A stretch of DNA of 64,000 nucleotides from Pavona decussata (lineage: Eukaryota). The stretch is from the NCBI GenBank assembly GCA_977016875.1, contig CDRNST010000282.1, forward strand, positions 806,001 through 870,000, read 5' to 3'. Shown here piece by piece: positions 18,401 through 20,811 of the stretch; position 1 is the stretch's first letter, and each line of letters begins with the position of its first letter. Below the pieces are notes generated by a model, which was not told the origin of the DNA, did no database searches, and saw nothing but the letters and a program-made list of their open reading frames with translations. Both the position numbers and the translations under genes were made by a program.

Positions 18401-20811
18401 AACTCATTGGGTAATCAGTGGCACTGGTCTTCTTTGGATTCACCGAATTCTGCACATAATCTTTCCATACAAATGTTAAGTTTGTCCTATGCTGCCTTTT
18501 CTGTGTAGCCCTCTGTACGTTAAGCGATTGACAACACCGACCTTGGCCAGTCGCCAACACATTGTTATTCCAGAAGCAACAAGCGTGTTTCGGCGAGATG
18601 TGATGTTTGTTGGGTTAATTGCTCCAAAAATTTGGATATGTCGTCTAGTATCACAGAATCTTGACGAAACGATGGAATTTGCAAGGAAGGCATGCGAAGG
18701 TCTTGATTCTTGTCGTGATGAGAGGCTGTAGGAGCTGCATCGGCCATCTGGCCGACTGTTTGAGTGACTTGAGAAACATTTTTAGTGAGGTCCTTCACAA
18801 CGCTGACAAGTCCAGCCACGACTCCTTGAAGTTCTTCTATTGTTTTCATAAATTCGACAAGATTTGGATTCTCCACCACTTGTAATCGTAAACACGGGGA
18901 ATTAACTGTGAGATCAACTGAGATTGTAGAAACGCAACTTTGTATTCTAAAACAGTAAGAAGGAAAGACTTGACAATACTCGTACTTGATAAAACGTGCC
19001 GAGTTCTCTGTTCGCTCCCTTTGTCACATGACCTTGTTTATGTGTCCCATGATCCACTACATCTTTCTCCCTCCCCCTCAAACCCCTTGCCTTAGTAATC
19101 AACCATTTTAAATCATACTTTAGATGATAATAAGGAGGATGATCTCCCATGGACGCTAATTGGTGGTGCCGCAGGAGGAGGTGTGGTTCTGCTTATTGCC
19201 ATCGGAGTTGCGGCATGGTATATGCATAAAAAGAGAAAGTGCAGGAAGGACACTAAAAGTAAGTAGCAACAGTTTGTATAACATCATCAGTTGCATCTGA
19301 GAGGGCATTGATACTTAGGTCCCTGAGTGCTTTGCCCTGGATGTGGTATGATCTTAGGGCGCTTTATGTTTGTCAGAACTGGCCGCCCAGACCTGCCAGT
19401 CTTTAAATCGAATGCGTCATGTTGAAGGGGTGGTGCTACAAAATCTTGAAAAATAGTCACTCTGAAAATGGTACGCGCTATTTTGAAGAAATTCGAAAGA
19501 CTAGGATAAACCTTATCCTTCAGTTTGGTGCATTCAGTTTACGAACTGACCAGTCTGGCCGGCTAGTTCTGACAAATGGAAAGTGCCCATAGTACCAGGG
19601 TTGTGCCCTCTTAAACCTTGATAATTGAACTATACCAAGCAGGACATCAATCTGGGCATTGGTTTTACAAGCGCCATTATCAATTCAGCATAGTGCTTGT
19701 GTAGACGATATCCATGGGCATTGTATCAGACAATGGCATCAGACTGTACACTATTTTTGGGGGTACATAGGCCCGTCACCCAAAGATCTCAACTTGGATT
19801 TGTCGTTTAATCTTAAACTTAAAAGCAGTTCTGCCAAGCTTTTAGCTGAAGAATGTGAACAGAGCACAGTTTTGTGCCGGTGCTTAGGCGCCAAGTGTAA
19901 ATGCTGCCTTAGTTCATCGACATGGGCACCAAACTTCCTTTAGTTGAATGTCCGTAAGGTGAAATGTCACACCGGCAACTCTCGACCAGAAGAGTGGAGT
20001 AAGTTTCAGATTTGCTTGAGTACTAACCTGAGTATTACTATTATTATAATTATTGTTTGCCACCAAATGTAATTTACAGAATCGTAAAGAAATAAAGGAA
20101 AATGGTGAGGAATTCTAAAGAAACCATGAAGCTTGTGCTTCTTCAACTAATGCTAAGTTACAGAGATTAATAGAATGACAGTGGGGAGATAGGTAAAATA
20201 ACAATTAGTGATTAAATACAATAATAAATGGAAAAAATGAAAAGGAAACATACACGAAAAGTAATAATATAAGGGAGAATGGGGGAAGGTGATCAGAAGT
20301 ATAGTTAAGAAATTTAATTTACCCACTGTAGATAATTTTTGCGCAGTTTAAAAAAAAATGAAGAAAAAATAAAGAAAAATAATAAACAGCAGCAAATTGT
20401 CATATCATACCATAGTTCTTTTAATCCATACAGTGACATTGCTGTTTTCTAACATTTCATGCAGATGGTTTGGTTTATGCAGACTTAGGAGACTTTGGGA
20501 GGCCACAGATGCCCCCTGTGTCCACTTCACCAGAAGCTCTGCCTCCAGTGAAAAGGCCACCAGCTTTCGAACGGACACAGTATGCTGACATCACAGACTT
20601 TCTCAAAGGCGATGCTAGCTTGCCTAAAGAGGGGAACAGTCAAAGTATAGAGATGAAGACCCAAACTGCCCCGCCTGCAAATGGTAACAGCCAAGGCAAT
20701 GAAGTGGAGCCTCAAGGTGCAAACAAAGGCGAGGGTGGGTTAAGACCCAAGGAAAGTGAACTGCAGGTTGATCCAGTGTTCTTTCTTAACTTAGGTTATA
20801 AAGCTAGTTAA
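257..20811 (+). CDS. Gene A: spliced multi-Ig/SEA-like type-I membrane receptor with ITIM+ITSM cytoplasmic tail (5'-incomplete)
   Basis: Phase-compatible AG/GT exons: 257-523, 1740-2012, 2365-2625, 3086-3361, 4821-5066, 6232-6486 (six Ig domains); 7118-7168 (stalk); 8339-8421, 8964-9004, 10682-10851 (SEA-like); 11955-12005 (second stalk copy); 19124-19258 (TM); 20465-20811 (tail; 3' end uncertain). Confidence 0.85.
1196..1470 (+). mobile_element. tRNA-derived SINE with (TTTA)n tail, gene A-specific
   Basis: A box TGGCGCAGTGG, B box GGTTCGATTCC; empty site in gene B near 52100 and 57003. Confidence 0.85.
1740..2012 (+). CDS. Gene A Ig exon (atypical, no C-strand Trp)
   Basis: tgcag|...|gtgag; KPENV...FTCTAKAANP...YRCEARNSIG. 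Confidence 0.9.
2365..2625 (+). CDS. Gene A Ig exon
   Basis: ccag|...|gtagg; [19 protein letters not shown]...[13 protein letters not shown]. Confidence 0.9.
3086..3361 (+). CDS. Gene A Ig exon (paralog of 1740-2012)
   Basis: gaag|...|gtcag; EPENV...FTCTAESANP...YRCEARNSLG. Confidence 0.88.
4005..4433. mobile_element. MITE with TA flanks
   Basis: TIR CCTTATTATAGGAAATTAACAATGCAC vs GTGCATTGTTAATTTGCTATAACAAGG. Confidence 0.7.
4821..5066 (+). CDS. Gene A Ig exon
   Basis: aaag|...|gtgag; VTLFCKFSGFPSPSVSW...TGEYNCSASNACG. Confidence 0.9.
6232..6486 (+). CDS. Gene A membrane-proximal Ig exon
   Basis: ttcag|...|gtgag; [18 protein letters not shown]...TGCYTCFASN. Confidence 0.9.
7390..7772. mobile_element. 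TTAA-flanked MITE, shared with gene B (~45438-45828)
   Basis: ttaa-GGACGGTGG...GCACCGTTC-ttaa; orthologous position in both paralogs. Confidence 0.6.
8339..10851 (+). CDS. Gene A SEA-like domain (3 exons)
   Basis: Exons 8339-8421, 8964-9004, 10682-10851; ...CKPGSAIIDLVLRFNRSV...FKVDPES; same intron phases as gene B 41430-40747. Confidence 0.75.
11025..11670 (-). mobile_element. Penelope-like element 3' fragment (GIY-YIG endonuclease C-terminus)
   Basis: AVYKIKCCDCQATYIG / RNLNVRLTEHKRA...IAEHHLQTNHRIDWD; ends at (TAAT)n. Confidence 0.85.
11035..11082 (-). ncRNA. Minimal hammerhead ribozyme motif in Penelope-like terminus
   Basis: TTGACT-CTGAAGA-TGACTTCCGCTCAGGTTGTC-GAAACGTC-AGTTAA: CUGANGA and GAAA cores, stem I and imperfect stem II. 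Confidence 0.65.
12048..12180. other. Assembly gap (others at 48692-48831 and 55255-55440)
   Basis: Runs of N. Confidence 1.
12480..13210 (-). mobile_element. Second copy of the same Penelope-like fragment
   Basis: High similarity to 11025-11670 with the same truncation point and (TAAT)n junction. Confidence 0.85.
13263..19061 (-). mobile_element. Degenerate Ty3/Gypsy LTR retrotransposon, 3'-truncated, in a gene A intron
   Basis: Order gag, protease (LDSCCSVS), RT (FVVDYRRLN, LPFGLKTAP, YVNG in place of YxDD), RNase H (LHVDASKLG), integrase (CPAC, DDE core 13477-14325); many frameshifts and stops. Confidence 0.93.
18868..19061 (-). repeat. 5' LTR (18881-19061, TGTA...TACA) and primer-binding site
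   Basis: On the minus strand the LTR end TTACA is followed after 2 nt by TGGTGGAGAAT (18878-18868), complementary to a tRNA 3' end (resembles tRNA-Ala). Confidence 0.8.
19124..19258 (+). CDS. Gene A transmembrane exon
   Basis: ttag|...|gtaag; LPWTLIGGAAGGGVVLLIAIGVAAWYM followed by basic HKKRK. Confidence 0.88.
19357..19590. mobile_element. MITE
   Basis: GGGCGCTTT...TTTGTCAGAACTGGCCG inverted as CGGCTAGTTCTGACAAATGGAAAGTGCCC. Confidence 0.65.
20465..20811 (+). CDS. Gene A cytoplasmic tail exon with ITIM and ITSM
   Basis: tgcag| acceptor, phase 1 matching the TM exon; GLVYADL...ERTQYADI. Confidence 0.82.

Follow-up and report, generated by a model that had tools for sequence, protein, structure and literature searches.

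A conserved ITIM- and ITSM-type tyrosine module in the predicted tail of a coral immunoglobulin-domain receptor that adjoins a kinase-bearing sister gene

We analysed a stretch of 64,000 nucleotides from the coral Pavona decussata (C282:806001-870000 of a 602 Mb assembly; hereafter the window), which has eukaryotic gene structure and a G+C content of about 37-40%. The window contains part of a plus-strand gene for a predicted receptor of the immunoglobulin superfamily (IgSF), whose last exon encodes two tyrosine motifs, one fitting the pattern of the ITIM (immunoreceptor tyrosine-based inhibitory motif) and the other that of the ITSM (immunoreceptor tyrosine-based switch motif). Convergent with this gene, on the minus strand, lies a sister gene (34144..58880) that joins a closely similar set of immunoglobulin (Ig) domains to a tyrosine kinase domain. 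All searches reported here were made exon by exon.

The receptor gene has at least nine Ig exons and extends at least 19 kb upstream beyond the window. Six of these exons lie within it (232..6512, plus strand; open frames 232-540, 1694-2071, 2334-2651, 2977-3471, 4799-5086 and 6201-6512), and they matched the Pfam models Ig_3, I-set and Ig_2 with E-values from 1e-6 to 6e-15; the Pfam matches of the ectodomain were generic Ig-domain ones only. Downstream, an open frame at 10662..10931 (plus strand), with the true exon edges inside it, encodes a juxtamembrane segment that matched no Pfam family, looks SEA-like in its sequence, and also precedes the membrane span in the coral proteins P0011 and P0069. 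A transmembrane exon (19124..19258, plus strand; acceptor AG at 19122-3, donor GTAAGT at 19259) encodes a hydrophobic span followed by HKKRKCRKDTK; its identity to the corresponding segment (membrane span plus stop-transfer sequence) of the relatives P0022 and P0010 is 57-75%. A long terminal repeat (LTR)-type retroelement, recognised by matches to RVT_1 (reverse transcriptase) and rve (integrase core), occupies 13000-18900 on the minus strand, in the long intron between the juxtamembrane and membrane-span exons.

The last coding exon (20465..20811, plus strand) encodes the cytoplasmic tail, with an acceptor AG at 20463-4, phase 1, and a TAA stop at 20809-11. Because this AG is the sole in-frame one between the upstream in-frame stop and the first motif, and so the sole available acceptor, we placed the first base of the exon at 20465. 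The donor at 19259 leaves one base and the tail exon supplies two, so that the phases match and the junction codon is A|AT (Asn). A search of 19259-20464 for the intermediate cytoplasmic exons of relatives (IHNS... and the YAxVDKSKK segments) found none, and the first tail tyrosine would lie about 15 residues from the membrane. By tblastn, the exons follow the same order as in XP_068733579 (P0010), a Montipora capricornis protein of 1481 residues. Exon content, splice phases and this colinearity predict that the gene product is a type I membrane receptor of the IgSF that combines many Ig domains with a short tail.

Translated in its open frame, the first part of the tail exon (20465-20595) reads DGLVYADLGDFGRPQMPP...RPPAFERTQYADITDF. 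Within it, LVYADL, followed by GDF, is encoded at 20470..20487 (plus strand; tyrosine codon 20476-78) and TQYADI, followed by TDF, at 20575..20592 (plus strand; tyrosine codon 20581-83). Published consensus patterns are S/I/V/LxYxxI/V/L for the ITIM and TxYxxV/I for the ITSM (PMC8631942). Lying downstream of the membrane-span exon, LVYADL meets the pattern [S/I/V/L]xYxx[I/V/L], and TQYADI, in the same cytoplasmic tail, meets TxYxx[V/I]. The original prediction, made from the DNA alone, had named these two motifs, a spacing of 35 residues between their tyrosines, a proline-rich linker containing PQMPP and LPPVKRPP, and a non-vertebrate-looking Ig receptor as their carrier. Translation and the published patterns bear out both motif assignments, the codon positions give the 35-residue spacing, translation also recovers the linker, and the motifs do fall in the cytoplasmic tail of an Ig-domain transmembrane receptor gene.

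The pair of motifs is unlikely to be an effect of amino acid composition. When the 115-residue tail was shuffled 200,000 times, 0.019% of the shuffles held an ITIM with an ITSM after it, and 0.009% held such a pair spaced 15-45 residues apart; the stronger case against chance is that the motifs are conserved in paralogues and in other corals. The tail exon matched no Pfam family, and the NPxY (PTB) and YxN (Grb2) sites that we looked for are absent from the tail of the window gene. An immunoreceptor tyrosine-based activation motif (ITAM) was rejected as a description of the tail, because 35 residues separate the outer tyrosines where an ITAM would have 6-12, and the middle tyrosine found in relatives has no leucine or isoleucine at +3.

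Both motifs belong to a module of 47 residues (20467..20607, plus strand) that is repeated across the genome. We found 13 further copies of the tail exon, or 14 in all with the window gene, with E-values from 1e-14 to 4e-26: two on contig C217 (79% and 68% identical), one on C100, one on C109, and nine that form a tandem array on the same contig as the window, 155-340 kb upstream of it (G000:C282:485490-651640). The array tails read EVNYADL...PPPY...TEYAVI, and in the one array gene read upstream of its tail we saw a V-set-like exon together with two Ig exons and a membrane-span exon; the nine-gene array looks like an expanding receptor family. Every genomic copy lies downstream of Ig exons, with Ig and FN3 on C109. 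Of five paralogous genes read in their upstream DNA, four showed a membrane-span exon, so that at least these are membrane receptors; none was found for the second C217 copy.

Across the genomic alignment, the invariant columns are Y-A-x-L, one proline and T-x-Y-A-x-I-T; 13 of the 14 copies keep the outer tyrosines 35 residues apart, and the other has them 28 apart. A third tyrosine, located between the outer two in a PPxY or PxxY context in relatives, is present in 13 of the 14 copies; the window gene alone has phenylalanine there, in PPAF (20557..20568, plus strand). This middle tyrosine is a possible third phosphosite or WW-domain site. Against the closest paralogue, the ratio of nonsynonymous to synonymous substitution rates (dN/dS) is 0.24 over the 47 codons of the module and reaches 0.72 for the remainder of the tail, both from small counts.

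These observations bear on the possibility that the window copy is a decaying or non-functional duplicate, whose motifs were inherited from functional relatives and are now unused, which we regard as decidedly improbable. The tail exon's ancestral beginning (QQP...) has fallen out of frame and is closed off by a stop, which calls for a new acceptor; the tail has none of the intermediate exons of its relatives, the otherwise near-invariant middle tyrosine is phenylalanine, and an LTR retroelement sits in an upstream intron. However, every exon for Ig domains, membrane span and tail is open, the pyrimidine tract of the new acceptor is good and its phase matches the membrane-span donor, and the dN/dS of 0.24 in the module argues against decay.

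To place the module outside this genome, we searched a profile of its 47 residues against 1.84 billion proteins and obtained 55 protein clusters with E <= 0.001, of which 30 reached E <= 1e-10. Thirty clusters were looked up, and the 12 that carry names are all scleractinian, from Montipora capricornis, M. foliosa, Acropora digitifera, Stylophora pistillata and Desmophyllum pertusum. The named relatives are annotated as hemicentin-1-like, Lar-like, NCAM1-like or uncharacterised, the best of them is 47-55% identical, and the full-length relatives are membrane proteins with Ig or Ig and FN3 domains. A word-based protein search with the tail exon returned only nine short unnamed open reading frame (ORF) calls, of prokaryotic style, on related eukaryotic contigs, in which the motifs are kept. 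No vertebrate protein was found among the named clusters of the 55 profile matches, many of which are unnamed.

We measured conservation on the profile-matched segments of 32 cluster representatives, which were not chosen by motif, as the frequency of the commonest residue at each position. In the first motif the tyrosine is conserved at 100%, Ala+1 at 97% and Leu+3 at 94%; in the second, Thr-2, the tyrosine, Ala+1, Ile+3 and Phe+6 are each at 100%. The middle tyrosine is at 97%, and the linker has a mean of about 47%. Conservation spans -3 to +6 around both outer tyrosines and, as judged from the alignment, peaks at the positions that SH2 domains contact. Over 42 module copies, the ITSM pattern is present in 41 and the complete ITIM pattern, including its -2 residue, in 32, which makes the first motif the weaker one. 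The expectation that the motifs would be kept while their flanks diverge was thus upheld, with the ITSM-type site giving stronger support than the -2 residue of the ITIM-type one.

The window gene has the minimal form of the tail. In relatives, the module is usually preceded by additional lysine-rich YAxVDKSKK segments, and two modules are sometimes present (P0010, P0011). Repeats of x-T-Y-A-Q-V-D-K-S-K-K, together with NLYDNV, occur upstream of the module in P0010, P0038, P0055, P0069, L023:7448-7747 and L027:7944-8222. These YAQVDKSKK-type and NLYDNV segments suggest further docking sites that are absent from the window gene.

The same conservation data can be set against a role in trafficking, in which the tail would serve the endocytosis and turnover of an adhesion-type IgSF protein through AP-2 sorting at Yxx-hydrophobic sites and Nedd4-type ubiquitin ligases at PPxY, without phosphotyrosine signalling. 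YADL and YADI both match Yxx-hydrophobic, a PPxY or PxxY sits between the motifs in relatives (strict PPxY in 12 of the 42 module copies, and PPPY in the nine-gene array), and relatives are annotated as NCAM-like, LAR-like and hemicentin-like. AP-2 recognition needs only the tyrosine and the +3 residue, and trafficking would leave the invariant Thr-2, Ala+1 and Phe+6 and the fixed spacing unexplained. Moreover, not all copies have PPxY, and the window gene has lost it (PPAF) while both outer motifs stay. We consider trafficking as the sole role of the tail to be rather improbable, although trafficking and phosphotyrosine roles are not mutually exclusive.

As a candidate reader of the two phosphotyrosines, we searched the genome for SHP-type phosphatases with the Pfam models of the SH2 and PTP domains, and obtained at least 49 SH2-coding matches. 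One locus has the order SH2-SH2-PTP on the same strand (C66:1230539-1243774), with SH2 matches at 1230539 and 1232523 and PTP matches at 1241270 and 1243625; no second such locus was found in this search, which gives a lower bound. The exons at this locus translate to an SHP-type protein, and its two N-SH2 exons matched human PTPN11 with E-values of 2e-32 and 2e-39, PTPN6 being the poorer match at 4e-28. By its sequence, with PTPN11 as its nearest solved relative, we identify this gene as the coral SHP-2 (PTPN11/corkscrew) orthologue. The residues of the SHP-2 N-SH2 domain that form the phosphotyrosine, +1, +3 and +5 pockets and the basic BG loop have been named (PMC8007070). In the coral N-SH2 groove, T42, T52, I54, L65, Y81, L88, E90, K91 and I96 are identical to human and G13 is kept, with changes of K89 to arginine and V14 to tyrosine.

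The N-SH2 domain of SHP-2 prefers hydrophobic residues at -2, +1, +3 and +5 of its ligands and acidic ones at +2 and +4, and SHP-type SH2 domains are among the few that read residues N-terminal to the phosphotyrosine, with threonine or a hydrophobic residue at -2 as a hallmark (PMC8007070). Docking to the N-SH2 domain of SHP1 is favoured by a medium-sized non-polar residue at pY+1 (Ala, Val, Leu or Ile), and alanine at this position is conserved in many ITIMs, that of SIRP-alpha included (PMC8631942). Both coral sequences, L-V-Y-A-D-L-G-D-F and T-Q-Y-A-D-I-T-D-F, agree with the N-SH2 preference at -2, +1, +2 and +3, and two sites joined by a proline-rich linker of 35 residues could span both SH2 domains of one phosphatase. 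A complex prediction with tail residues 1-50, which are disordered, and the N-SH2 domain split as two chains, all unphosphorylated, scored 0.02, a figure that weighs on neither side of the question of binding. The original prediction had described the tail as an ITIM plus ITSM arrangement for tandem SH2 domains; both patterns are indeed present and the genome has an SHP-2-type gene, with the ITIM-type motif as the weaker element of that arrangement.

From this evidence, we somewhat favour the reading that the tail is a phosphotyrosine docking module that recruits an SHP-type phosphatase; we infer the phosphorylation, the SHP binding and its inhibitory sign, and the inhibitory checkpoint-like role named in the original prediction is likewise putative. 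Several points weigh against this reading. The coral motifs have aspartate at +5 and phenylalanine at +6, in contrast to the hydrophobic +5 of the SHP-2 N-SH2 consensus, and the -2 residue of the first motif breaks the ITIM pattern in 10 of the 42 copies. Yxx-hydrophobic also matches endocytic sorting signals, and other SH2 proteins (Csk, SHIP and the Src family) accept pY-A-x-[L/I]. In addition, SHP-2 docking often promotes signalling outside vertebrate immune cells, including at non-immune bilaterian receptors, so that "inhibitory" may be the wrong word even if docking is right. Lastly, the first tyrosine of the window copy is only about 15 residues from the membrane, and this copy could be a derived or decaying member of its family, because it is without the middle tyrosine and the YAxVDKSKK segments.

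An alternative concerns the partners of the outer tyrosines: in place of SHP, these would dock SH2 proteins such as Csk, SHIP, an adaptor or a kinase of the Src family, and the tail would act as a phosphotyrosine scaffold without being an SHP-recruiting ITIM/ITSM pair. Csk and SHIP accept pY-A/S/T-x-hydrophobic. The conservation from -3 to +6 fits SH2-type recognition generally, in a genome with at least 49 SH2-coding matches, and the third tyrosine, although 97% conserved, has no part in an SHP model. The +5 and +6 residues are off the SHP-2 N-SH2 optimum, yet threonine or a hydrophobic residue at -2 is characteristic of what SHP-type SH2 domains read (PMC8007070). A tandem-SH2 reader would also be well served by two sites kept about 35 residues apart, and the SHP-2 groove is conserved in the genome. 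We judge docking to other SH2 proteins to be an unlikely account of the tail.

The sister gene forms the genomic context of the tail-bearing one. On the minus strand it has Ig exons at 48300-58880, a SEA-like exon at 40706-40963, a membrane-span exon at 39828-40061 and, for the tyrosine kinase, exons within 34144-39275, and it matched the Pfam models for Ig and PK_Tyr_Ser-Thr. The Ig exons of the two genes are 80-87% identical, or 61-69% for two exon types, and their juxtamembrane, SEA-like exons are 67% identical. The kinase domain is intact, with GxGx and DFG motifs present, and its nearest solved kinases are CSF1R, KIT, RET, VEGFR and FGFR. The two genes thus have the layout of paired receptors: they adjoin, their ectodomains are near-identical, and one has the tail module while the other has a kinase. 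The charged membrane-span residue typical of ITAM-adaptor pairing is not part of this layout, the sister having its own kinase domain.

Some further features of the sister gene and its surroundings were recorded. The kinase exon with HRDLAARN and DFG (37362-37517, minus strand) has no tyrosine in the stretch of residues that follows DFG. In the sister gene, a block of four Ig exons occurs twice in almost the same form, at 50784-53968 and 55666-58880, about 4.9 kb apart, with N gaps nearby (48692-48831 and 55255-55440); the two blocks arose either by internal duplication a very short time ago or as an artefact of assembly. Between the paired genes, downstream of the tail exon, two more I-set Ig exons (25587-25883 and 26396-26629, plus strand) possibly belong to a third IgSF gene or a gene fragment. 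A Crypton-like ORF resembling a tyrosine recombinase lies at 42617-43528 on the plus strand, with weak matches to Phage_integrase and DUF3504, and a repeat ORF occurs in two minus-strand copies that share HKRATRNGD...HH (11282-11647 and 12939-13196); these ORFs are probably mobile elements.

Under the SHP-recruiting reading, the tail exon would encode the signalling end of the receptor, which has many Ig domains, a juxtamembrane domain, one span and a short disordered tail that amounts in essence to one copy of the module: (E)-[L/V]-x-Y-A-D-L-G-D-F, a proline-rich linker, the P-x-x-Y position and T-x-Y-A-D-I-T-x-F. Clustering of the receptor by ligand would lead a Src-type kinase, or the sister receptor kinase, to phosphorylate both outer tyrosines. 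The doubly phosphorylated module would then bind both SH2 domains of the coral SHP-2 orthologue and release its autoinhibition, thereby placing an active tyrosine phosphatase at the engaged patch of membrane. In this way the tail-bearing receptor may damp or shape the kinase signal of its sister; because the sister ectodomain is almost identical and wired to a kinase, both receptors would read the same ligand with opposite enzymatic outputs.

This arrangement has partial counterparts among vertebrate receptors. Like SIRP-alpha (SHPS-1), PZR and PECAM-1, the predicted coral receptor is type I, with several Ig domains and a disordered, proline-rich tail, and it has x-Y-A-x-[L/I] motifs, with alanine at pY+1 as in the SIRP-alpha ITIM (PMC8631942). 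It also shares with them a proximal ITIM-type site, a distal site with threonine at -2, and a spacing that a tandem-SH2 phosphatase could bridge. In contrast, we detected no sequence homology to these proteins, the named matches of the tail profile being coral proteins only, and the coral spacing is 35 residues where vertebrate ITIM/ITSM spacing is roughly 22-25. The third conserved tyrosine, the SEA-like juxtamembrane domain and the receptor-tyrosine-kinase sister gene are further features that these receptors do not share.

PD-1, which is known from cartilaginous fish to mammals (PMC12151841), combines the ITIM VDYGEL with an ITSM (PMC8631942), at Y223 and Y248 respectively, of which the ITSM is indispensable (PMC7078208). 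The order of the motifs is the same in the coral tail, and the distal ITSM-type site, indispensable in PD-1, is the better conserved one in corals. However, PD-1 has a single IgV ectodomain and glycine at pY+1, whereas the coral gene has at least nine Ig exons, ten or more Ig domains and alanine at pY+1, and no homology between the two was detected. The original prediction had likened the motif order to that of PD-1, Siglec and PECAM, and the order is indeed shared with PD-1; homology to PD-1, Siglec or PECAM was rejected, since the tail profile found coral proteins only among its named matches.

Our searches of the open-access literature turned up nothing on ITIM/ITSM receptors in corals; closest are the Alr proteins of the cnidarian Hydractinia. 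Only two Alr tails have ITIM matches and the genome has SHP homologues; a balance of activating and inhibitory signals has been proposed, no ITSM has been reported, and the tails are too diverse for one alignment (PMC9546547). Both systems consist of cnidarian IgSF transmembrane proteins in clustered gene families, with some ITIM-pattern tails and SHP homologues, but the coral receptors differ in having one conserved ITIM plus ITSM module of 47 residues across coral families, on several ectodomain types. The adjoining genes, near-identical ectodomains and opposite cytoplasmic wiring also recall the KIR, LILR, SIRP-alpha/beta and PILR receptors of vertebrates, except that the coral activating partner would act through its own kinase domain, with no charged-residue pairing to an ITAM adaptor. 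What is new here is a conserved three-tyrosine ITIM-ITSM module, of predicted function, in several coral IgSF receptor families, together with a kinase-bearing twin.

We propose, tentatively and as an idea that is more likely wrong than right by a wide measure, that corals have paired receptors of a pre-bilaterian style, in which a duplicated Ig ectodomain is wired either to a receptor tyrosine kinase or to an SHP-2-recruiting module and sets thresholds for self/non-self or symbiont recognition. The module would have been shuffled onto several ectodomain families, including that of the nine-gene tandem array. ITIM/ITSM-SHP signalling is the core of vertebrate inhibitory immune receptors, and outside chordates it has mostly been represented by isolated motif matches; the coral pair offers an alignable module with fixed spacing, kept across lineages, a conserved SHP-2 groove and an adjoining kinase twin. 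The question at stake is whether inhibitory receptor signalling existed before bilaterians, and whether it is at work in coral allorecognition, symbiosis or immunity. If our reading is true, the logic of phosphatase-recruiting inhibitory receptors would be far older than vertebrate immunity, or would have been invented twice with the same motif grammar.

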